Of a stretch of 64,000 bases of DNA, positions 22,701 through 63,109 are shown in pieces. The stretch is from NCBI GenBank assembly GCA_026770705.1, contig JANJGN010000005.1, forward strand, positions 44,020,001-44,084,000. The letters run 5' to 3'. The notes under the pieces are model-generated. The model worked only from the letters and a program-made list of their open reading frames with translations, searched no databases and was not told where the DNA came from. Position 1 is the first letter of the stretch. Each line of letters starts with the position of its first letter. Both the position numbers and the translations under genes were made by a program. This stretch comes from Isurus oxyrinchus. Lineage: Eukaryota.

Positions 22701-25700
22701 GCTGGATTAGGGTCATGTTAAATGTTAGTCTTGTCCGCATGACAATTTGATTTAAAGACCAAAGTAACTCAACAAAATAAGTTGCAAGATAAAATGACAG
22801 GAAATTGAATGTTTGCATCTGAATGGCTTGAGTCAAACTTACTTTCTTCATCAAAAGGCACAGGGCGGCAGTAGACGACCAGCTCTGACAATTCCAGTGC
22901 AATCTTCTTTCGCCTTTCCATTATTTTTCCTTCTTGCATCTGTTACAAAGAGATATAGACATTTAACAGCATTGTGGGAACAATGGCACCACCTCGACTG
23001 CAGTGGTTCAAGGAGAAGGCCTGCCACCACCTTCTCAAGGCAAATGCCAACTTTGCCAGCATAGCCCATATCCTGAGAATGAAAAGCAAATTTTCTTTTC
23101 TAATTGCCCTGTTCTAAGGGAGTTGATTCATTCTGGGGTATAGTTTCACTGGCACTGCCCATTCTCCAGTGCCTTGCCTAGGTGGCCATTCTACATGTAT
23201 GAATCTTGACAGGTCACTCAACCTTGAAACGCATCACCATGAGGTCCATCCTAGTCTCACCTAATGTCTACTAGCAGGTATTTTCTAGCAAGATCACGGG
23301 ATAGCAACCAGGAATGAGAACTCTGGCTGACTCTTCTCCTCTCTAGCTAGGACAATCTGAAGGACAGCAGGTCAGACCTTGATAGTGGGGATGTGAACAG
23401 CATTCCATTCCCTGCCTCAGAAGCATCAGAACCATTATATTCCTGTGGAATATTTCAGCATCTCAGTCCATACGAATCCTGATCCATTGCCTATCAATCC
23501 CATTCTCAGTCAGACGCATCCAGATCCTTTTTCAAGTTGATCACCTGGCTTCAGCTGCAACATGTATCACTTATCCAAACTCCCAGGGAAAAGACCTTCA
23601 GTTCTGCATGAAACATTTCATTTTAAATCAATATGCTTTAATTCACTGCTCACAGTTAAATACCTCACTGACATCATTCCACCCATGTCATTCAGTGTTT
23701 TAAAACCAGAATCTCGTTTTGTTTTCTTTTCTGCATTAATTCATCACACACACACCTAATCACACCCCCCCATACCCACACACCCAAACAGAAACACACA
23801 CTCACACACCCACCCACACACGCCCCCACACAGAAACACACACACACTGCTAAATCATACACACATCCAATCTCACAAACACACACACTAACACCCATCC
23901 AATCTCTCACACACGCACACACAATCTCTCTCTCACTCTCACACACACACACACACACACACACCTACACCCCCCAATCACACACATATCTACACACCCA
24001 ATCACACACACACACATATCCACCCAATCACACACACACACACACGCACACACAGCCCCACACCCAATTACACACACACCCACCCAATCACACACACACA
24101 CACCCAATCACACACACACACCCACACACCCAATCACACACATACACCCACACACCCAATCACACACATACACCCACACACCCAATCACACACATCCACA
24201 ATCACACAATCCCTGAATAGTGGTCAGGAATGAGATACTTACCCTTCTCTAACTCAGGGAGTTGTGTCAAACTGTAGCTGCCTGTGATGCCTGTCACTTT
24301 AAGACCAGTTTAACTGAGTAGGAGTCACGTGATTTGTTCAACCAATGTGTGGCTAGTGCAGAGGGAATAAATTCCAGGGAGCTTAGAGCCTTATCCTTGG
24401 AAAAGATGGCTGTATGAGGGGCTGGCTGTATACAAGCAGCCAAAGAAGCTCTCATGGAAATAAAATTCGTTTTGTTTAACCAAGAGGCCTCCCAGACTGT
24501 GTTTCTACACTAACTCAGCCATGCCATGGCTAAAATCAGCTAATTCAACAAACGGCAATACAACAATCTGCATTTATTTAGCACCTTTAATAGAGTAAAG
24601 CACTGCAAGGCATTTTACAGTAGATTTATCAGGCAAAGATTAACACTAAGCCAAAGAAGGAGACATTAGAACAAGCGGCCAAATGCTTTTTCAAAGCGGT
24701 GGGTTATAAACTGTGCCTTAAAGGAGGAAAAGGAAGTGGAAAGGTGGTGTGGTTTGAGGGGAGATTTCTGGAGCTTAGGGCCCAGGCATGGTGACCAATG
24801 GCTGGGGGAAGGAAATGGAGAATGGACAAGAGGCCATAGTTGGAGGAATACAGTTCCTGGAGAACTGTGTGGCTGGACATGGTTGGCGAGATGAGGCCAT
24901 GGACAGATTTGAACAGAAATATGCACGTATACCTATGTTCCTAGAGGAGATTGGTAAACAGGATTTGGTGTGGGGTTAGGATGTAAGCTGCTCCTGGTCT
25001 ATCTGGATCAGCTACTCACGAGTCAAACTCACAGCTGCCTGGGGAACCAGGTTAAAATTGTATTCTACTGCTAGAAAATAAACAGTTGCCACAGCCAGTT
25101 AGGCCTCATTTGTCACATACAGCTCCTTCAAGAATTGGGGAAAGAAAGTAGATGCAAATATATTCTGCTTTACTCAGTTGATAACAAGAATGAGTTCAAT
25201 TGTTTCAACATCTCCCAATGGCTTTTGTTTCACACTTACTCTGGCATCTGCATTCTGTGTTGCCTCCCTGATCTTGGCAGCCCAGTCATTCAGATCCTCT
25301 TGGCTATCTGCAGCCACGTCCAACATCTGCACAGGGTGGGACATTTGTTGGGAGTGGATGGTGAACACGTACTGCTTGCTTCCTTTCCCTTCCTTCTGAA
25401 TAACTGCCAAGTAAATACTGAACATGTTAATATGGTGCGAATAATCACAGGCACTCAATAAAGCATCTAAAATATCTTTGAAAAAAATAATTGGCTCTGA
25501 TTTTGGTTCCCTCTGCTTGGTGGAAACTAGGTGGGAAGGGCAGTGGAGGAGGTGGGCAGTGATGGCTTCTCAGTGAGTCTAGCCCTGAGTGGAGAAGGTT
25601 CGTGAGTCAGAAGAGGCTCAGCAGGTGGGTTTTTTAACAATGGGTTGTTTCCTCGTGAGGCAGGAAAGAAGAGGAGTAGTCCACCATGGGCTTCACAAGG

Positions 25701-28700
25701 AGGCCTTGGACTTCCCTTGCAGCAGCCTTCCCCTCTCCCCTGATCACCTCCAACACTACACCACCCCTTCAACCCCAGACAGGTCTAATCCCCTGGGTTC
25801 CTTGTTATGGCCGCTGGCCAAATTCCTGCTCCAGTGGATTTGGTGGGGTTCAGAGGGACTATTGGATAATTAATGTATTTATTCATGAGCCACACTGTTA
25901 AGATTATCCAGGCTTCAAGTCCCCAGGCTCCCCAGGCACGTTTCCCACTTTGGAGCCATTGCCTCACCTCTGTATTGTGACAGATCAGAGGTCTCTCTTG
26001 TTTTAGAAATAGAAATCCCTATAATACATTTCTTATAGATATTGTTGCTTGCTATTATTGTCATTACTGTTAAATTACCTTTTATATCTGTTTGCGGGGA
26101 TAACTGTTTCTATATTTGGGGAAGGTAGTAAATGTTAAAACCTATTTAGTAAATAGGAGCTTGATTGAAAATAAAATATTATTTATGCTAAATTCTACCA
26201 ACAGGATTAACTGCAGCAGCTCACCAAGGTTTCTTTTAAACCAACTGGAAGGACAAAGGTAGTACCACCTCCAAGTTCCCCTCCAAATCACACACATCCC
26301 AACTTGAACATAATTCCCTCAGTCCTTTATTGTCACTGGGCTGGATTTTAAAGGGTGCTGTATTCCTCGTGTTTCCCCCCGCCCCCACCAACTGAAAAAT
26401 TGGTTCTCAGCCCGCCCATCCGAAACCCAGCTGTCCTGCACCGATATTACGTTGAGAGCAGCCTTAATGGTTTTAGAGTGGGACTTTCGTGCCACCCCAG
26501 CCACCCCCATCTTGGAGGAAGTCCCGCTCTGGAGACCTGCCAGCCAATCAGATTAGCTGGAGGCTCTGTAGTCCCAGCTGTGCCAGGATCATGCAGTTAG
26601 CCACTGCTGGGACTACAGGCAGTCCTCAAGAAGAAGAAATGATGTAGCCCGGATTTCAAGATAAGTCCGGGGTTTTGGACAGGCCTTGGCTCCAGTGAGA
26701 AGGGAGGATGGGGGTGGGGTTGAGAAGCCTGGAGGGATGGTTAAATGGCAGGGTATGGACCTGAAGGTGACCCCCAGTGGAAGTATCCCCCCACTTCCTG
26801 CACAACGGCAACCCACGCAGTGAAACCTGCTGGGTTACCTCCACCTTCCCTCCTATGTAACTCTTTCGAGTACAAACATGTTTCCATCTGTTTTTCAGAT
26901 GAAGTTACATTGTTTGCCATTGTGAGATTTGAACTCTTGATTTCTTTCGAGTACAAACCCGTTTCCATCTGTTTCAGATGAAGTTACATTGTTTCATAGT
27001 TTGCCATTGTGAGATTTGAACTCTTGATACTCTTTCGAGCACAAACCCGTTTCCATCTGTTTCAGATGAAGTTACATTGTTTCATAGTTTGCCATTGCAA
27101 GAGTTGAACTCTCGATCTTGGGGTTACAAACCCAGTACCATAACCACTTGGCTATTTAGGCCAAGCCCAAAACATGTTTCCATCTGTTCCAGATGAAGTT
27201 ACATTGTTTCATAGTTTGCCATTGTGAGATTTGAACTCTTGATCTTGGGGTTACAAACCCAGTACCATAACCACTTGGCTATTTAGGCCAAGCCATAGTT
27301 TTGCCATTGTGAGATTTGAACTCTGGATCTTGGGATTACAAACCCAGTACCATAACCACTTGGCTATTTAGGCCAAGCGTTAAGAAGATGTAACTCTTTC
27401 GAGTAGTAACATTGTTTCATAGTTTTGCCATTGTGAGATTTGAACTCTTGATTTTCTTTCAAGTACAAACCCGTTTCCATCTGTTTCAGATGAAGTTACA
27501 TTGTTTCATAGTTTTGCCATTGTGAGATTTGAACTCTTGATCTTGGGGTAACAAACCCAGTACCATAACCACTTGGCTATTTAGGCCAAGCTCTTACTGC
27601 ATATGTAACTCTTTCGAGTACAAACCCATTTCCATCTGTGTTCAGATGAAGTTACATTGTTTCATAGTTTGCCATTGTGAGATTTGAACTCTTGATAATC
27701 TTTTAAATGAAAACCAAATCAACAAAATCGGGACAAATCAGGCACAGCCCCTAATTCAGGTCAGCTGTAAAACCAAGAACAAAGTTTAAAGGAAACTTAC
27801 AAACTTTAAATCAAAATGTGATTAAAGGGGTCAACAAAACACCCCAGTCCCCGCGGTGCCCACCGAGCACGGAAGGCCTCGAGAGTGCCAGCAGACACCG
27901 CGTGCTCCCTCTCCAGGGACATCCGGCAGCGAACGTAGCCGCAGAAGAGGGACAAACAATCGGGCGCGACTCCCCTGTCGATCGCCTGCTGCCTGGACCT
28001 GTTAATGGCCAACTTGGCCAGGCCCAGGAGCAGGTTCACGAGGAGGTCCTCTTCCTTCCCGACCCCCTTCCACACCGGGTGCCCATAGATCAGGAGCGTG
28101 GGGCTGAAGTGCAAACAAAACATCAATAAAAGGTTTTTCAAATAACTAAAAAGGGAGTGCAGCCTACAACACCCTGTGTATACATGGTCCACGGACTCCA
28201 CAAGACCGCAAAAAGGGCACGTGTCCTGAGAGTCCGTGAACCTATGCATCCTCTTATTATAGGGGACTGCTGCATGCAACACCCTCCAACCCAGGTCCCC
28301 GATAGAAAGGGGGAGGACACCTCCCATCGGGGGCCTCCGCCGCCGGACGGCAACAAGGCACGCCAGGGCGTGTCCTGTCGACGGACAAGGGCGAGAAAAT
28401 GGAAGGTGTGCAGCAGCAGTCCGTACAAAAAGCCCCTCTTTGCTGTGCCAAAAGGCACGGAGGGCATGTCCCCGAGGCGGTTCATATTGCGGGGCACCAG
28501 CACCCGAGGGAGGGTTCGGGGCTTGGGGCCAATGTGGAATTCTGTCTGAACAGGGGAACGTTCAGACGGAAGACCACCGCGCACCTGGGCCACCTCAAGA
28601 CCCAAAATAACGTCGGGTCTGAGCACGACCGTTCTCAGGTCTTGGATGGCATCGGCTGCGACCTGGACACTCACAGACGCGCGTCGCGCCAACTCCTGCG

Positions 28701-31700
28701 GGAGCATCCAGCCCAGTCCTCCGCCACCCAGCACGTCCCCGATCCTGGTCACCCCTGCGGCCACAGCCCTCCTCTCCGCCAACCACTGAAAGGGACGGAG
28801 GGGCGGATTCCTGAGCAGTGGCTCTCTGACGATAGCCGCTACTCCTGACGGGGGAGAGCTGTGTCGCGAGGCAACCACTTTCCAGACTTTGATCAGGTCT
28901 TGGTAAAAGACGGGCAACGCCTGCAAGGAGCCACCAAGGCCCAGTTGTTCTATAAACAGGAGCTGCACGTCATAATTCAGGCCGTGCACCTGACGGAAGA
29001 AATACGTCGTCAGGGCACACCATCTAGGAGAAGGCTCGACGTAGAGGTATCGCTGCAGGGTCTGAAGGCGGAAAGTCGCCACCTGTGTGCATAGGCACAC
29101 TAGCGCCTGACCGCCCTCCCTAAGCGGGAGACTCAGAACCTCGGCAGCGACCCAGTGCAATCTTTTGTCCCAGAAGAAGTCGACTAACAATCTCTGGATT
29201 CTTGTGACAAAGTCCGGGGGAGGGGTCAAAGTGACCAGCCGATACCACAACATGGCGGCGATCAGCTGGTTTATGACCAGAACTCGACCTCGGTAAGATA
29301 GCACTCGGAGCAGTCCTGTCCAGTGCCGCAGGTGAGCGGTGACTTTCGTCTCCAGTTCCTGCCAGTTTGCCGGCCAGGATTCCTCAGCGGGGCAGAGATG
29401 GACCCCCAGGTAGAGGAGGCTGGTCCTGCTCCAGGTGAAAGGCCTGAGCTCCTCGGGTAGGGAATCCATCTGCCACTGACCGACCAGGAGTCCAGAACAT
29501 TTACCCCAGTTGATCCTGGCAGAAGAAGCGGCAGAGTAGACCTCTTGGCACTCGCGCATCCTCCGCAGGTCAGCCGGGTCACTAAACATAAGGAGCACGT
29601 CATCGGCATAAGCCGAAAGGACCACCCCGATGCCTGGCCCGCGCAGGACCAATCCCGACAACCTCCTCCGCAAGAGTCGCAGGAAAGGCTCCACGCAAAT
29701 AGAATACAACTGGCCAGACAGGGGGCAGCCCTGACGTACCCCTCTCCCAAAGCGAAGGGGCGCCGTCAGGGACCTGTTAACCTTCACTAGACACTCCGCG
29801 GCGGTGTACAGAAGTTGGATCCGGGCGACAAAATGCGTCCTGAACCCAAACGCTCGCAGAGTTCCGAGTAAGTATCCGTGATCCACCCTGTCGAACGCCT
29901 TCTCCTGATCGAGAGACAGGAAGGCACTCGATAGACCAGCCCTCTGGGAATAGTGACAAACATGTTTCCATCTGTTCCTATTCAGATGAAGTTACATTAT
30001 TTCATAGTTTACCATTGTGAGATTTGAACTCTTGATACTCTTTTGAGTACAAACCCATTTCCATCTGTTTCAGATGAAGTTACATTGTTTCATAGTTTTT
30101 GCCATTGTGAGATCTGAACTCTCGATCTTGGGGTTACAAACCCAGTACCATAACCACTTGGCTATTTAGGCCAAGCTCTTACTGCATATGTAACTCTTTC
30201 AAGTCTTTTTAGTAACTCTTTCGAGTACAAACACGTTTCCATCTGTTCCTATTCAGATGAAATTACATTGTTTCATAGTTTGCCATGGTGAGATTTGAAC
30301 TCTTGATAATCTTTTAAATGAAAACCAAATCAACAAAATTGGGATAAATCAGGCACAGCCCCTAATTCAGGTCAGCCGTAAAACCAAGAACAAAGTTTAA
30401 AGGAAATGATGTAGCCCGGATTTCAAGCTAAGTCCGGGGTTTTGGACAGGCCTTGGCTCCAGTGAGAAGGGAGGATGGGGGTGGGGTTGAGAAGCCTGGA
30501 GGGATGGTTAAATGGCAGGGTATGGACCTGAAGGTGACCCCCAGTGGAAGTATCCCCCCACTTCCTGCACAATGGCAACCCACGCAGTGAAACCTGCTGG
30601 GTTACCTCCACCTTCCCTCCTATGTAACTCTTTCGAGTACAAACATGTTTCCATCTGTTTTTCAGATGAAGTTACATTGTTTGCCATTGTGAGATTTGAA
30701 CTCTTGATTTCTTTCGAGTACAAACCCGTTTCCATCTGTTTCAGATGAAGTTACATTGTTTCATAGTTTGCCATTGTGAGATTTGAACTCTTGATACTCT
30801 TTCGAGCACAAACCTGTTTCCATCTGTTTCAGATGAAGTTACATAGTTTCATAGTTTGCCATTGTGAGATTTGAACTCTTGATCTTGGGGTTAACCCAGT
30901 ACCATAACCACTTGGCTATTTAGGCCAAGCTCTTACTACATATGTAGTGGAGGAGGCAGAATCAGGCCCTTAGGTGGCTGTTAATTAGCCATTTAAAGGC
31001 CTCAATAGGCTTCTGGGCAGGCAGGATATCTGATGCCATCCCCACCCACTGTAATATGGGAAACACAGGGTTGGGCAGGGAGACATTGGGAAGGCCACCC
31101 GCTTTATTTTAGGAGCACCTCTGTCCATCTTCAAATACACCGCTAGGGGGGGCTGCAAGCCCACTGAGTCAAAATTCTGGAACTCCTTACCTAATTGTAT
31201 TGCGTGAGTACCTTGACCCATGGACTACAGCATTCAAAAAGAATGCTCAGCACCATCTCGACAGTATTAGGGATTAAAATTAAAAGCTCACATCCCAAGA
31301 GTTAATATAAGAATAAAATGTTGATTTGCTTATTGGCAATTTTCTGTCAAGACAAAGTAGCTTGATTGTTTAAACAAGCACACATGTCAGAATACTTGAC
31401 AAATGTTAATAGATACTATGTCTACCCAAGTTATAGAAATAGTTAACATTAGGTTATCAACTGCCTATCCTAACAGTAAACTAAAGAGCCAGTAGTTATT
31501 GTGTTTGCCTCAAGAGAGATCTTGTTTACCAGACTGGTCATTTTGATCTGTCCAGAAAGTAGTTAAATTGCCCAAGTCCTGCCTGTATAACTTTGAAGGT
31601 TGACTTGATTGACAGGCCGGTTCTGATTACTGGTGAATGATACCTATCTGTCTTTCTTACTGCTAGTTTGGACGTCAAACAAAAGAATGAGATATGACTA

Positions 31701-43700: not shown

Positions 43701-46700
43701 TGCTAAAATGGCTCACTCATCGATTTTTGTTGCCTCAGTCTGGGCTTCTCCCTCTCCAGCTGAATGGCCAGACTGATAATGCTGCTATACACCATAATTT
43801 TGTGTATATATGTCTATGTGTAAATGCGTGTTTGTGTGTGTATGCAGACCTTTATGTGTATGTATATGTGTGTAGGTTACTATGGGCAGAATTTTCACTG
43901 ACCCGACCAGCAGAAGGTCATGGGGAACCCATCATTTAGGAATTCCCCCCATCATGTTGTGGAATTTTAACTCCACACCAAATTAGTAATGTCAGTGATT
44001 GGTCCCATGCCCAGTGACCTAGGATGATTGAAAGCTGGGCCTTAAGTCGGGCGGGGAGCCAGGCACTGTTGACCAATAGTATCTCGTAAGTCCATGATGG
44101 GAATAGGGGTAATGACTGGGACTGGGGTGGTGGAGGAATGGGAGTGGCGGAAGGTTAGGGGCCAACGGGAGGGAAGGGGACTGGCCAGGTAAAGAGAAAC
44201 AACAATCATAGGGAGAGGTGATTGGAGGGGAATGCCATCTAAAGGTGGGGAGAGGAAAAGTTTACTGATCCCCTGATCCCAGTGGGGAAGTTGGGTTCTG
44301 AATGGAAGAAGGTTGGTGGCCATGTGGCAAGGGTTAGAAAGGGGCTTGGTGGAAGGGAGGAAATTGGTCCTGGTGGGAGGATCAGGGCCTGGTGGTGGTG
44401 GACGTATTAGGGACTAGTGGTTCTGGGGATTGATAGTGGGGAGGGGCATGGTAGGTCAGAGGCCTAAGGAGGGAGGCCATTGGGGGTAGGTCCTGATCAC
44501 AGAGGGACTGCAGGCATCTGGATTCAGAGGGTGAAGGTACTTCCTGAATGCATCAAGTCCTTACCTTGAGGAAGCTGCTGGATACCTCAACACCTGGGAA
44601 ATCCTATTGACAGTAGTTAAATTTCAAAAGGAGAATAACAATGAGGTTCGCAATTTCAATGGTGTTTAAAAGCTGCAACCTGCCTCTTTATGCATAGGGT
44701 TGGCTGCCCACCCAGCTTCTAGAATTAGTTACAGCTGGAATTGGGCGGGTTAGAGAAAACAGACATCCGACACTTTAACCCCCACCTCCCCCACTGATCC
44801 CCACCCCAGCCTGACTCAACTTTCCTGTTTTTTTTCAATTAAAATTCAGTGAAATTTACAATGGGAGGATGACAGTTTTGCACAAAAAGTCCCTGAGGCA
44901 CTTCTGTGCAGACCTATACTCAATGGCAAATCACTTGCCTCACATCCACTTGTCCTTCTTGGGATGTACCTGTCATTCACACAGGCATTAGGGAATTAGG
45001 AAAAAAAAACAAAAACGAAAAGTGAAGGAATAAAATCCCCACTCTTCCCACTCACTGTTGTGCCCATCTTCTCCAAGGTTTCCTCATTGATTGGGTACCG
45101 CAGTTTCATTTTACGATACAGAGGGTGCTTTTCATAATAATTCACCAGGTCCACCAGGCTCTCAAATTCTGCTGAGCTACCGAGCATGAAGAGGCGTCCC
45201 TCCTGCTGGATCCGGCAGTGTTTAATTTTCCCCTCCGCTCTAGAAATCACAGACAAGATGTGTTTTGTACATCAGACTAGAAACACATTTTCACAATGAT
45301 TAGAGGCTAGGGAGCCAATTTTCCAAGTGTATTACAACTTGCTGAATTAATTTACTGATTTTTTTTTTGAATGAATCTTCCTGTTTCTTTAAATTCTTTT
45401 TCTGCTTACTGTGATGAGGGATGTTAGTGCTGGGATTGTAAAACTTTCCCATTTCAGGTACTAGTGACAATGCAAGGCACTCTCAGGTTAGGTATAGTGC
45501 AGGTTAGACAGAAAGTAAAGCTCCCTCTGTTCAGTTTACAAGGATGTGCATCCAACCCAAACTCAGAGGAATGTCTCCTAGTGTATCAGTTTCCATTTTT
45601 CACACTAACCAAGGTGTGGCAATCTTCGAGTGAAATTGTCAAACCAGTGCTGAATTGGGAGCAGTTTTGTTTTTCAAAATGACAAAACTTAATCCATTTA
45701 AGACCCTTCCAATCAATAGGCAGATGAAATTCACATTCCATCAGTTTGGATGAGATGTGATCCTCAATCTTGCAGGTAAAATGCAAGTGGTGAACCTACT
45801 GTACCATCTATCAACTGATGACTTTTTCTCTTGTTAATGTTCATAGATGACTCGCGCAGCAGCTCTCCACTCACTGTTTGAGTTCATGACCCATTCAGCA
45901 ATCTGACTGCTTAAAGTAAAAGGACTAGTTGTGAAATCTGAGTAACTTACACAATTAATTCAGTCATAACATTCATCATCACTCACCGGAAGGATATGGC
46001 GTATGAGTTGAGCTCATTCCTTTTACGCACTAAGAAGGCTCCATCCCGCGGTACTCTCATTAGCATGTGCTCAGCCTGTAGACGTGTAAGGTTGGCATGG
46101 TACCACCTGATGGAATAACTCATCCTTATAAGTATGTTTGTATAATCACATTATATTATTTTTTCAATCACTGAGTATCCCCTCAATTTCTCAGTCTCTG
46201 ATCTCTGCCATTCCCTTTTTCTTTTCTAGGACCTGCCAAACCTGAAACCTTCATCACATAGCTGCCTGGATACATCATCACCTCAAAGTTCCCCTCTAAC
46301 TCACAGACCATTCTAACTTGGACACATATCACCAATCTTTCACTGTTGTTGGGTCAAAATCCTAGAACTCCCTAACTGTATTTACCTTCACCACATGGAC
46401 TACAAAGGTTCAAGAAGGCGGCTCATCATCATCTCCCAAAGGCAACCATAGATGGGCAATAAATGCTCACCTGGCCCACATCCTGAAAAATGATATAACC
46501 AATATAACTTATATAATATGGAAAGCATCAACCCTCTCAGTCTTCCCTCCACTTTTTAATCAGCAAGATTTTAAAACCCAAGCTTGAAGAGTCATACAGG
46601 CTCAAAATGTTAACTCTGTTTCTCTTTCTATGGATGCTGCCAGACCTGTCAAGTTTTTCTAGCACTTTCTGTTTTTATTTCAGATTTCAAGCATCTGCAG

Positions 46701-49700
46701 TATTTTGCTTTTATCATCAAAATATTGCTTGATTTTACTCATATTTTCTCTTGCACTCTTCAGCCCTAATGGTACCACACCCTGTGGACCTTAATTAGAT
46801 TCTCAATTAAAGAATACAAAAAAAACCCCATGTGTACAGACAAAGGAATCCTCTGAAGCCTTATTAAGTTCCTATGGCAACATGCATGGCAGATTACCAA
46901 CAAAAGCAACAAAAGGCCTTTACCGTTCATCTAGATTTCTCAGTTTAAAAGCTGAAATGGATATATTCTAGTTAACACTCACTCTTTGCTTTCATGAGCA
47001 TTTGGTTGTGGTACTGGGTCAGTTAGTCTCATCTCAAATTCATTACAGCGCAAAGGAACCTCCCGGTAATGACTGATCAGGGTATAGAGGCTGTCAAAGA
47101 CCAGGTTGTCAGTCAGGTAGAACTTGGTGGTGCCAGCTTCTTGTCGGGAATGGATGCGGCAGTGTTGAACCCGCCCCGACCTCCTGTGCAAATGGAATAA
47201 ATAAGTCAGATCAAAATTAATTGATAGTGGAGTGCAAGTAAAATTTTTATAAAATATCCAGGGTGCAAGTAATTCCCTGGACTTTGTTCCTCACTGACTT
47301 TATTTTGCTAAGAAATTCAAGCCTAACCAAAGGTCATTCTCCAAAATGTTCCTACACAGTAAACAATGGAATGACAGAACACAGGTCTGTCTCTCAGATT
47401 CCACATACAGTAATCACACCATTATTGAAATCTGTTCCTCCAACAGAAAATGAGAAATGGGGATGTTCGCTGATGATTGCACATTGTTCAGTACCTTTTG
47501 CAACTTCTCGGGTATTGAACCAGTTCGTGCCCATATGCAGCAAGACCTGGACAACATGCAGACTTAGGCTGATAAGTGGCATGGAACAGACATGGCACAC
47601 GAGTGCCAGGCAATGGTCTTCTTGAATAAGAGAAAATTTAACCATCTCTCCTTGACATGCAGCAGCATCACCATTACTGAAATCCCCCATGAACAACATC
47701 CTGGAGGTTACCATTGACCAGAAACTGAACCAGACCAGTTATATAAATACTGTAACTACACGAGCAGGTCAGAGGATGGGAATTCTACAGACAGTAACTC
47801 ACCTCCTGACTCCCCAAAGCCTGTCCACCATCTACAAGGCTGAAGTGAGGAGTGTGATGGAATACTCTCCACTTGCCCGGATGAGTGCAGCTCCCACAAC
47901 ACTCAAGAAGCTCGGTGCCACCCAAAATAAAGCATCCTGCTTGACTGGCACCCCATCCGCCACCTTAAACATTTATTCCCTCCACCACTGGTGCACAGCA
48001 ACAGCAGCCAGTACCATCTACAAAATGCACTGCGGCAACTCACCAAAGCTTCTTCGACAGTACATTCCAAGTACATGACCTCAACAACTTAGAGGAACAA
48101 GGGCAGCAGGCTCATAAGAACACCACCATCTGCAAGTTCCCCTCCAAATCATCACCATCCTGACTTGGAACTATATTACTGTTCCTTCAGCGTTACTGGG
48201 TCACAATCTTGGGGCTCTCTTCCTAATAGCATTGCAGGTGTTCCTACACCACATGGGTTGCAGTGGTTCAAAGAGATGGCTCTCCACCATGTAAAGGGCA
48301 TTAGGAATGGGCAATAAATGCTGGTTTTGCCAGTGATGCCCACATTTCAGGAAAGAATCAAAAAAATGCCATTTGTCCCATCGTATCTGTGCAAGCCATA
48401 CAAAAGTGATCCAGTCTAATCCCACTTTCTAGCTCTTGGTTTGTAGCCTTGTAGGTTACAGCACTTCAAATGTACATCCAAATATATTTCTAAATGCAAT
48501 GAGCATTTGTACCTCTTACATACTTTTAGTCAATAAGATCCAAACCTCCACTGCTCTCTGGGTGATAAAATTACTCCTCACTTCCTCTCTAATCCTTCTG
48601 CTAATTACCTGAAATCTGTGCCCTAGGTTTTAGTGACTTTTCAGCTAAGGGAGACCAATCCTCCCTATCGATTCTATCCAGGCCCTTCGTATTTTGTACA
48701 CTTCAAATAAATCACCTCTCAGCCTCCACTGTCCTAAAGAAAATAACCCCTCCCTATCCACTCTTTCCTCATAGCTAAAATTCTTAATTCCTGGCAACAT
48801 CCTCCTAAATCTCCTCTGTACCCTCTCTACTGCGTTCACATGCTCCCTGTAACGCAGTGATGTGAACTGAATGCAGTACTCTAGCTGTGGTCTAACTAGC
48901 ATTTCATACAGTTGTGGCATTATCCCCTGCTCTCATTTCTATACCTCAGCTAACAAAGGAAATTATCCCTTATGACTTCTTATCTATCTATCCTACTGCC
49001 TTTAAGGATCAGTGGGCATGCATTCCAAGATCCCTTTGTTCTTCTACATTTCTCGGTAGCCTACCATTTATTGTGCATCCTCTTACCTTATTCGCCATGC
49101 ACAAACATGTTACCTCACACTTATCTGATTCAACTCTATATGCCACATTACTGTTCATCTTACTGGCCCACTGATAACTTTCTGCAGTCTACAGCTTTCT
49201 TCCTCACTATCAACCATGCACCCAATTTCTGTATCATCCACAAACTTTTTAATCATAATCCCTATATTTAAATTGAAACCATTTATCTCCACTATGAAAG
49301 AAAGGGATCCAGTACTGAACCCCACTGGCAACATCTGATGCTATAGTACCAACCAATGAGTTGAGTGTCATCCATATTTGTATCGAATACAAAAAAATTT
49401 TCTTCAGTGCTGTAAATGATACTTCTTTCTGTTGTCAGCATTAATTACACTGAGATCATCTAAATCTTCATGTAGACACAGAATAAATCTCTAGGACAGT
49501 TTTTTCGCTTCATCAGGCGGCTGTGAAACAGTGCACCACCTGGAATCGGGCCCCGACTGCGATTTTACGCTCACTGGCCAATTAATGGCCAGCTGGCATG
49601 AAAGGCACACTGAGAACCTCAACGCTGCTGAGGTGGGGGCAGGAGGAGTGCAAGCACTAAAGTCTGCACATGCACAGGGCAGCGCACGCTGGAAGCTCCC

Positions 49701-62065: not shown

Positions 62066-63109
62066 TATGTCTCTATTTATAATGCACATGATCTCATATA
62101 CTTTATTACTTGCTTTGTTAACCTCTTTTGCCATCTTCTAAGATTTGTGTAAAGATAGCTCCGGGTCTCTCAGTTTTTGCTCCACTTTTAAAATTGTACC
62201 ATTTAAATTGTATTTTCTCATCGGATGGAATGATGAAGCAGGCTTGACGGGCCATACGGTCTACTCCTGCTCCTACTTCTTGTGTTCTCCCCTCATTTTT
62301 CTTACCATCGCCTCATACTTCTTTGCGTTGAACTTTATCTGCCCTACACCCACCTTTTCCATCAGCCTATCTATTTCCACTTGAAGTCTATCACTTACTT
62401 CTGTTACAGCTGAGAGTTTTATAAAATTATTATGATTTAGGACTGGTGAGCAGGACTTTTTGGATGGTGGGGGTTTCTCACTCTGCCACCTGAAGGGTTG
62501 GTGAGGAATGCAACCTTGCCGATCACAGCAGCCTCAGAGCCATTTAACAGAGCACTTTAATTGACTGGAGGTGGGACTTCCATCCATCACTCAAACTGAT
62601 TGGCTGGCAGCTCTGTAGTCCCAGCACTGCCAGTGACAGCAGTGCAGCGGGCAAAACTGTGACTACAGTAGTTGCCAGAAGTCCTGGGGCAGAATTTTAC
62701 AATACCCCACCAGCAGGTTTGTGGGTTGGGGGGGGGAGGCTCTGTAAAGTTCCCCAAGTGGTCTTCCCACCATCCACCCACCCAACCCCAATTTGTCTCC
62801 AATTTTAGGTAGGGTGGGCAAAGCATAGAGTGGCCCACCTGCCCTCACCCCAATTGAGGCCCTTAAATCACCAAAATTGGTCACTTCCCACCCTGTTCTC
62901 AATTTTAAGGCTGGCAGGAGGAGCTCAGGGGCTGTGGGGAAGCCCAGAAGGTCACTCTGTTCCCTGCTCTGGCCTTAGGTGTGAAGTAAGGGATTGCCTC
63001 ACTGAAGGGCCTCATTTCCACATTGTTCAATAATTGGATGCTGGACATCCATGTTGTGAATGTAAATCAGTACAAATGAGGCTGAGAATTGAGCATATTT
63101 TTAAAAGCT

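Follow-up and report, generated by a model that had tools for sequence, protein, structure and literature searches.

Many families of the Tx1 clade of long interspersed elements (LINEs) are target-specific, including families that are specific for other transposons (PMC4494074). The targets reported by Kojima (2015) comprise Mariner, long terminal repeat (LTR) and Harbinger transposons as well as microsatellites, a family being taken as target-specific where one sequence type makes up more than 20% of its flanks (PMC4494074). In crocodilians, the short interspersed element (SINE) SINEU shares its Mariner target with the LINE Tx1-Mar, without a shared tail (PMC4494074), and the target of the zebrafish element Dewa is a tRNA-Leu spacer (PMC3706591). 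The present analysis concerns a 64-kb stretch of Isurus oxyrinchus DNA (contig JANJGN010000005.1, positions 44,020,001 to 44,084,000; hereafter the window), which contains no N and in which a Tx1-type LINE and a tRNA-Thr-like SINE are packed into one array where the ends of both elements repeatedly meet a single bond of the SINE. It is plausible, although held with some reserve, that a high-copy LINE of the Tx1 clade preferentially inserts at this bond of the tRNA-Thr-derived SINE, and some copies of the SINE itself probably insert there too. A literature search found no paper on a shark Tx1/tRNA-Thr SINE pair, which may be listed in Repbase, in Dfam or in supplementary figures S3-S6 of PMC4494074.

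The window stretch was also found in sequence data of organism A (four runs, about 0.8 of its words; probably the source sample) and of a related organism B (about 0.53 of its words). Contigs of A (X1), contigs of B (X5) and two sets of raw reads of B (X20 and X24) were compared with the window over 26400-31200 at 85% likeness. Divergence between the two organisms is about 2% where the array meets its right flank. Scans of metagenomes for further copies gave no matches.

One bond shared by SINE and LINE ends

A search of the window with one SINE unit (blastn) returned 14 matches, all on the minus strand and all within 26862-30946, with no further copy anywhere else in the 64 kb; an earlier note on this DNA, made from the letters, had counted about as many. 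In 8 of the 14 units (numbered U1 to U14 in Table 1) the SINE ends exactly at one bond, at 26941, 27028, 27452, 27696, 30036, 30307, 30708 and 30795 on the + strand, and in the other six the sequence continues past the bond into the head. On the minus strand the bond reads ...CCCCAAG^ATCAAGAGTTCAAATC..., with the T stem following after three bases and the B box after five. In the alignment to the Rfam tRNA model, tRNA positions 45 and 46 stand on its two sides, which places it in the variable loop, and SINE position 72 is the first base after it. On the minus strand, the sequence before the break is a SINE 3' end (...GAAAGAGT or ...GAAAGAA(A)) in six of the eight cases and the 3' end of the LINE (...AAAAGATT) in the other two, at 27697 and 30308. 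The earlier note's claims that the breaks fall at one bond upstream of the B box, and that both Tx1 3' ends join it, are thus borne out at all eight of its coordinates, with SINE 3' ends joining the same bond. When up to one mismatch is allowed, the window has 12 occurrences of the 15-mer leading up to the break on the + strand (...TTGAT), where 0.01 would be expected, and none of 100 shuffles reached 12; in the two remaining units (27102-27116 and 30112-30126) the 15-mer carries two differences.

The units that adjoin at the bond differ in subtype: some carry AACGGG and others AACGTG or AACATG, there are indels in the loop, U4 and U6 have TAGGA inserted, and U3 and U14 lack 10 nt. This makes plain tandem copying an unlikely source of the joins.

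Two other ways of arriving at such an order were considered and rejected. If the two AAGAGTT motifs of the SINE, one at the B box and one near the 3' end, had undergone unequal exchange, the result would be ...GAAAGAGTTCAAATC..., whereas the joins keep ATC and both motifs. A nested arrangement of the stretch 26854-27378, in which three heads would be followed by three bodies in the manner of a Russian doll, fails because the subtype markers of U10 and U11 do not pair with those of U14 and U13. Since the block U12-U13-U14-A recurs as U1-U2-U3-A', that is, as one head with three bodies, there is also no need to match U10 and U11 with U14 and U13.

The SINE and the LINE

The identity of the SINE follows from its head. 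The Rfam tRNA model matches all six heads over model positions 1-71, at 17.7-28.8 bits, in each case below the gathering score of 29, and the anticodon loop aligned to that model, UUUGUAA, gives UGU, the anticodon of tRNA-Thr, in agreement with the earlier assignment of the element. ARAGORN called no tRNA gene in the array, as is expected for a decayed tRNA-like head. The tRNA-like sequence runs across the bond, through the T loop with its B box and into the 3' acceptor strand, and because the model spans the bond in all six heads, the half that lies downstream of the bond is derived from the SINE and not from the LINE. The body that follows contains a small hairpin. The element thus shows features of a tRNA-derived SINE (SINE2), namely a tRNA-related head with A and B boxes and many dispersed copies with unrelated flanks. 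A 3' tail common to the SINE and its partner LINE was not found: the last 134 nt of the LINE align with the SINE body at a local score of 16, no higher than the mean of 16.1 (standard deviation 2.7) for shuffled sequence, and the likeness is confined to the terminal AAAGA(G/T)T. A derivation of the SINE body from the LINE tail was accordingly rejected, both for this lack of significant similarity and because the tRNA model spans the bond.

The LINE is truncated at its 5' end and lacks poly(A) at its 3' end. Its reverse transcriptase (RT) piece is open over 28141-29955 (605 codons) and its C-terminal piece over 27809-28327 (173 codons). Pfam finds RVT_1 at 58.5 bits, and zf-RVT at 22.9 bits, which is below the cut-off of 27.5. 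The RT piece is 48% identical over 551 amino acids (E 5e-164) to residues 579-1122 of Xenopus laevis Tx1 ORF2 (YTX2_XENLA), and the C-terminal piece is 46% identical over 166 amino acids to residues 1127-1291 of the same protein, including a CPFCG...H...C motif, so that a cysteine-histidine zinc motif follows the RT domain. Against other clades the RT piece scores 81 bits with human L1 ORF2p and at most 49 bits with R2 proteins. The nearest database proteins are two ENA entries (74% and 68%), followed by sea-turtle proteins (about 50-60%), and several teleost relatives carry the source name 'Transposon TX1'. By pairwise similarity scores the classification of the LINE as Tx1-type is therefore well supported, and the earlier reading of it as Tx1 holds. 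Relatives such as P0025 and P0183 carry an APE-type endonuclease domain (PF03372).

The reading frame of the LINE breaks near 28320-28324. Contigs of both organisms differ from the window there, and the break is thus confined either to this copy or to one subfamily.

Joins in the reads and contigs of two organisms

The reads of organism B place the LINE in a large family. In X20 its depth falls from about 2625 at 27849-28009 to about 855 at 29781-29941, as expected for a high-copy family of mostly 5'-truncated copies. At 29955, where the depth is about 900 and where the copy in the window begins, so that every other copy has to part from it, 540 reads of X20 (agreement 0.98) and 526 of X24 (0.94) run on 5'-ward; other copies continue as LINE at that point. 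At the opposite end of the LINE, no pile of loose ends was seen at the 3' join 27696/27697 among the six positions listed per run, in any of the four runs, while piles were present at control sites. The depth at this join is 1257-1452 and, scaled from 29955, 750-870 loose reads would be expected there if all copies had unlike flanks; as the smallest piles listed held 471 (X20), 382 (X24), 37 (X1) and 5 (X5) reads, the share of LINE copies that diverge at the bond can be put, as a soft limit, at no more than about 54-63%. Within U7, which directly follows the LINE, the private extra base of the window copy at 27640 is missing from 1340 of the 1634 X20 reads, and these reads therefore come from other copies.

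Individual contigs show the bond in other contexts. One X5 contig (depth 217) that joins 30317 to 30869 holds SINE positions 1-86, the final 10-12 nt of the LINE and then the SINE from position 72, with a 15-bp target duplicated. A third context is given by an X1 joint from 30315 to 27603, where a SINE tail is followed by 6 nt, the final 8 nt of the LINE and then SINE position 72; and in the X1 joint from 26942 to 27294, SINE positions 1-85 and a single base precede position 72. Two further joints, from 28353 to 29969 and from 28803 to 30037, have truncated LINEs following SINE 3' regions.

A constant join between LINE and SINE across the genome would be explained equally well if the join were inherited. 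In that case one old Tx1 insertion in a SINE would have produced read-through transcripts carrying SINE positions 72-158 as the tail of the LINE, the RT would accept the 3' end of that tail, no site-specific nicking would take place, and the headless arrays would stem from duplication at the DNA level. Such an origin is the main rival to directed insertion and is considered unlikely. The variety of AT-rich flanks of SINE copies described below agrees with it, as do the presence of SINE position 148, and not of a head, upstream of the LINE in the window, and the likelihood that the window's own LINE join is a single event copied by duplication. Moreover, the spacer that follows the SINE body is also deep in the reads (about 1450), so a longer composite 3' end may travel with the LINE. 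However, an inherited join does not predict that SINE 3' ends meet the very same base, as they do in at least three joins of mixed subtypes, nor does it predict the X5 contig in which a LINE stub of 10-12 nt stands between SINE positions 1-86 and the SINE from position 72 onward. In addition, 5' truncation of a unit composed of LINE and tail should be ragged, rather than always falling at position 72.

The SINE itself leaves most of its ends in other sequence. At its 5' end (27293/27294), 939 and 652 loose reads in X20, and 906 and 642 in X24, run into AT-rich sequence with an agreement of 0.33-0.34, and at its 3' ends (27455, 30037 and 30212) 688, 471 and 796 loose reads of X20 run into varied sequence after ...GAGTTAC, with an agreement of 0.34-0.44. 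The depth of the SINE reaches about 4700 on the best head, as estimated from the bin mean. The spacer sequence at 27595-27602, at the X20 depth given above, belongs to the repeat family and not to a unique flank, and this depth, together with the lack of a large pile of loose ends to its left or right, points to a great abundance of SINE-spacer-SINE dimers genome-wide.

A further possibility is that the units were joined as RNA, with the RT jumping end to end between abundant RNAs within one insertion and the constant break reflecting a fixed 5' end of the SINE RNA, or a hard stop, at position 72. The head-to-tail dimers, with a complete tail running straight into a head, of which there are four in the array and more in 27 X1 contigs, favor concatemers of this kind, as does the placement of the whole array between two copies of TATGTA. 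tRNA position 45|46 is not known to be a site of processing or blockage. A jump to the 3' end of an RNA should, in addition, copy the normal tail of the SINE, which the bond-joined units lack, and the LINE stub with its 15-bp duplicated target resembles a target duplication made at the DNA level. Concatemers of RNA are ranked below an inherited join and appear very unlikely.

A proposed model of SINE-directed insertion

If insertion is directed to the SINE, the following model may be proposed. The APE-type endonuclease of the LINE would nick the bottom strand at the bond, and target-primed reverse transcription would start there. A second nick, made at a variable distance downstream, would give rise to target duplications that start at SINE position 72; the 15 bp of the X5 contig, possibly 77 bp at the LINE in the window and the 393 bp found around a 3.2-kb block could be duplications of this kind. 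Where the incoming RNA is that of the SINE, its head could pair with the head of the target, so that only the body would be added and one head would come to stand before extra headless bodies. Each product would keep or duplicate the target, and clusters could thereby grow. In its fullest form, in which the Tx1 endonuclease homes to the boundary between the variable loop and the T arm of a SINE that the same machinery mobilizes, the SINE would serve as cargo, as landing pad and as a head for the LINE driven by RNA polymerase III (Pol III), and every insertion would regenerate or duplicate the site to yield self-extending arrays; this wider proposal is possible but more doubtful than preferential insertion as such.

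Duplication history and evidence against directed insertion

Two duplications can be traced within the array. The younger is a direct repeat of 26636-27166 and 30403-30930, 97.9% identical over 531 columns (520 matches, 8 mismatches and 1 gap), each copy of which holds two joins; its boundary coincides exactly either with the bond or with the 5' end of a SINE. The older duplicated block pairs 27405-27795 with 29990-30406 and has LINE end, body, spacer, full SINE and body in the same order in both copies. Substitutions amount to about 5% throughout the older block, with 3 in 99 positions of the LINE and, in the SINE parts, 5 in 87 (plus one indel), 8 in 155 (plus one) and 3 in 47 (plus one); the LINE part (3/99) and the SINE parts (16/289) do not differ (p = 0.42). 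An independent insertion of the two LINE ends was rejected on these grounds. A further block, spacer-U8-join-U9, is 93.1% like leader-U1-join-U2 over 203 columns.

The divergence of the younger repeat is uneven. Six substitutions and a 3-nt indel fall in U12/U1, compared with two substitutions in the other 393 nt (p = 0.004), and three of the six lie within a 6-nt patch in the T arm of U12. Either the true young repeat is 393 bp long and ends on the bond like a long target duplication, or gene conversion has altered one of the units.

These duplications have to be set against the proposal of directed insertion, and several other observations weigh against it as well. Given the uniform divergence and the shared order of five elements, the two Tx1 joins are most simply a single event, and the likeness of spacer-U8-join-U9 to leader-U1-join-U2 means that there may be only three separate joins; the eight joins of the window represent at most four separate events, perhaps three. 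The probability that three to four events would meet the same bond by chance is 4e-5 to 2.5e-7, assuming that they are independent and that breaks fall at random along 158 nt. The bond is common to 8 of 11 breaks, three 3' truncations of the SINE lying elsewhere (near positions 85 and 124, and at 148), and internal deletions are also present in the units. The sequence upstream of the LINE in the window ends at the last of these three positions and is not a head. As it begins inside the RT domain, this LINE copy has no endonuclease domain of its own. The low agreement of the loose reads at both ends of the SINE, in X20 and X24 alike, shows that the SINE is dispersed, with most copies in varied AT-rich DNA and not confined to the target, and dispersed copies usually end in a tail (...GAGTTAC...) that is missing from the units joined at the bond. 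Head-to-tail SINE dimers are common, with 27 X1 and 9 X5 contigs over five joints, and one SINE-SINE join lies at about position 65 (X1, 27134 to 27605). Finally, the argument from the lack of a pile at the LINE join draws on the six positions listed per run, beyond which there are 6851 further ones and for which the rule of ranking is unstated.

It could also be proposed that local DNA events suffice, a single chance join having been multiplied by unequal crossing-over, gene conversion and segmental duplication, with the length of the array perhaps a product of a partly wrong assembly. Two duplications are indeed demonstrable, U2 is identical to U13 and U3 to U14, and no contig covers the whole array: those of X1 break off at 26882 and begin again at 30908, so that the order of units between these points is as the assembly gives it. 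Joins at the bond, both LINE/SINE and SINE/SINE, nevertheless recur in other settings and in the contigs and raw reads of another organism. Neighboring units differ in subtype, and the chance probability calculated above, if three to four events are independent, is small. Local events on their own are thus regarded as very unlikely and, like RNA concatemers, are placed below an inherited join. The earlier note had ascribed the growth of the locus to repeated attack on the site. With eight breaks reduced to at most four events, part of that growth came from segmental duplication and not from repeated attack; the cluster grew also through at least two DNA-level or long-duplication events.

Features of the array and its flanks

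All elements of the array, SINE units and LINE alike, lie on the minus strand (Table 1). Read 5' to 3' on that strand, the order is right flank, 16-nt leader, U1, U2, U3, A', the 96-nt LINE end and U4; then a 16-nt spacer, U5, U6, the LINE (29955 to 27697), U7 and a second 16-nt spacer; and lastly U8, U9, U10, U11, U12, U13, U14, A and the left flank. The leader recurs with one difference as the two spacers, at 27592-27607 and 30177-30192. The LINE stub meets A' across a microhomology of 4-5 nt. In U4, about 22 nt of the SINE 3' end are locally duplicated at 30193-30216, as if an extremely short second copy had been added at the tail.

Table 1. Features of the SINE/LINE array in 5' to 3' order on the minus strand (positions are those of the window; the bond is the one before SINE position 72)
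Feature	Position	Strand	Remarks
16-nt leader, tail-like piece	30931-30946	-	Precedes first head; contains TATGTA at 30941-30946
U1, full SINE with head	30796-30930	-	blastn; Rfam tRNA 17.7 bits at 30857-30925
U2, headless SINE	30709-30795	-	First base at bond; blastn and motif
U3, headless SINE, 10-nt internal deletion	30627-30708	-	First base at bond
A', copy of non-SINE flank A (223 nt)	30404-30626	-	99.1% over 226 nt
Tx1 LINE stub, final 96 nt	30308-30403	-	97.0% to 27697-27795
U4, headless SINE	30193-30307	-	First base at bond
Spacer and U5, full SINE with head	30037-30192	-	Rfam tRNA 24.9 bits at 30100-30171
U6, headless SINE	29956-30036	-	First base at bond; cut at SINE position 148, where LINE begins
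Tx1-type LINE, 5'-truncated within RT domain (2259 nt)	27697-29955	-	Open reading frames, Pfam, protein similarity
U7, headless SINE	27608-27696	-	First base at bond; directly after LINE 3' end
Spacer and U8, full SINE with head	27453-27607	-	Rfam tRNA 20.2 bits at 27515-27586
U9, headless SINE, internal deletion, 14-nt 3' tail retained	27379-27452	-	First base at bond
U10, SINE head only	27294-27378	-	Cut near SINE position 85; Rfam tRNA 22.7 bits
U11, SINE with head	27169-27293	-	Cut near SINE position 124; Rfam tRNA 23.7 bits
U12, full SINE with head, patch of changes in T arm	27029-27168	-	Rfam tRNA 28.8 bits at 27096-27161
U13, headless SINE	26942-27028	-	First base at bond; identical to U2
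U14, headless SINE	26860-26941	-	First base at bond; identical to U3
A, non-SINE flank, part of young direct repeat	26636-26859	-	Contiguous with older repeat on its left

The two copies of TATGTA that enclose the array stand at 26854-26859 and 30941-30946 on the + strand, and the flanks next to them are weakly inverted (27 nt, 70% complementary). The pair could be the target duplication of a founding insertion, or merely part of the SINE tail. A contig of organism B covers 30907-31200 with six differences, so that the rightmost SINE predates the split between A and B.

The flanks of the cluster lie in older repeat families, 26264-26310 and 31165-31259 resembling 46279-46435, with further likenesses at 48125-48167 and 62592-62868. 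In the copy at 46.3 kb only about 25 bp separate the left piece from the right one, so that some 4.85 kb were inserted into an older element here. Coding flanks, such as a Harbinger gene, were considered and rejected: no open reading frame with a family match adjoins the array, and its flanks are old non-coding repeats. Farther to the left, a 94-codon open frame on the minus strand (25177-25458) has a weak match to the PH domain (PF00169, 22.2 bits, below the cut-off of 25.1) and is probably an exon of a host gene, in which case the cluster is likely intronic. A CA-rich microsatellite interspersed with CCC/AAT lies at 24000-24211 (Tandem Repeats Finder, periods 8-40).

Implications and comparison with known systems

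If directed insertion is the correct reading, the locus would exemplify a sequence-specific LINE with an APE-type endonuclease that uses its own partner SINE as a safe harbor, with less damage to host genes, and it would show a route by which the head of a SINE comes to precede a LINE. It would also add one more natural, defined nick site to those of the few sequence-specific LINE endonucleases, with an interest for targeted insertion like that of R2 (PMC6895275). For annotation, arrays of this sort should be taken neither as satellites nor as sets of independent insertions.

Among described systems, the classic pairs of tRNA-derived SINEs and LINEs resemble the present one in that the SINE combines a tRNA-derived head, bearing A and B boxes, with a body and a short tail that lacks poly(A) (PMC3747384). 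The members of those pairs share a 3' tail (PMC3747384), whereas nothing significant beyond 7-8 terminal bases is common to the SINE and LINE of the window. The model put forward for the 5' junctions of R2 and R1 is alike in another respect, as an incoming RNA with target sequence from upstream on it is attached with no duplication of that sequence (PMC6895275), which in the case of SINE-into-SINE insertion would leave one head with several bodies. R2 differs in having a restriction-like endonuclease and in residing in ribosomal DNA, and the step that involves upstream target sequence is a model for R2 as well (PMC6895275), while for the SINE of the window it is purely conjectural.

Dewa, Keno and Mutsu are target-specific retrotransposons found in or beside small Pol III or small nuclear RNA (snRNA) genes, namely the tRNA-Leu spacer, U2 snRNA and 5S rRNA, respectively (PMC3706591; PMC4494074). 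The earlier note had placed all three in the Tx1 clade; for Keno this stands, but Dewa and Mutsu are listed in the consulted portions of these sources merely as target-specific zebrafish elements (PMC3706591; PMC4494074). Their targets are multicopy genes of the host, whereas the candidate target in the window is a tRNA-derived retroposon and the site lies inside the tRNA-like body and not in a spacer. Tx1L of Xenopus laevis, which inserts site-specifically into the mobile element Tx1D, provides the closest named protein to the LINE described here (via PMC4494074). Its target is a piggyBac-type DNA transposon and not a SINE, and its endonuclease has been assayed, in contrast to the predicted role of the LINE in the window.

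The closest likeness is to Tx1-Mar and SINEU. There, too, a LINE of the Tx1 clade prefers a site inside another transposon and a SINE shares that target with no evident common 3' tail; in addition, some Tx1 families carry the small-RNA-derived (U1/U2) head of the SINE, and SINE and Tx1 copies are nested side by side, which may be counted as a further likeness (PMC4494074). The system differs in that its target is a Mariner DNA transposon and that its heads derive from U1/U2 snRNA. In the window, by contrast, the candidate target is the partner SINE itself, within its tRNA-derived Pol III promoter region, and most copies of the SINE lie outside the target. Tx1-Mar and SINEU may thus be regarded as a close published precedent, and the array described here would be a system of the same kind, from which it would differ in having the partner SINE as the target.

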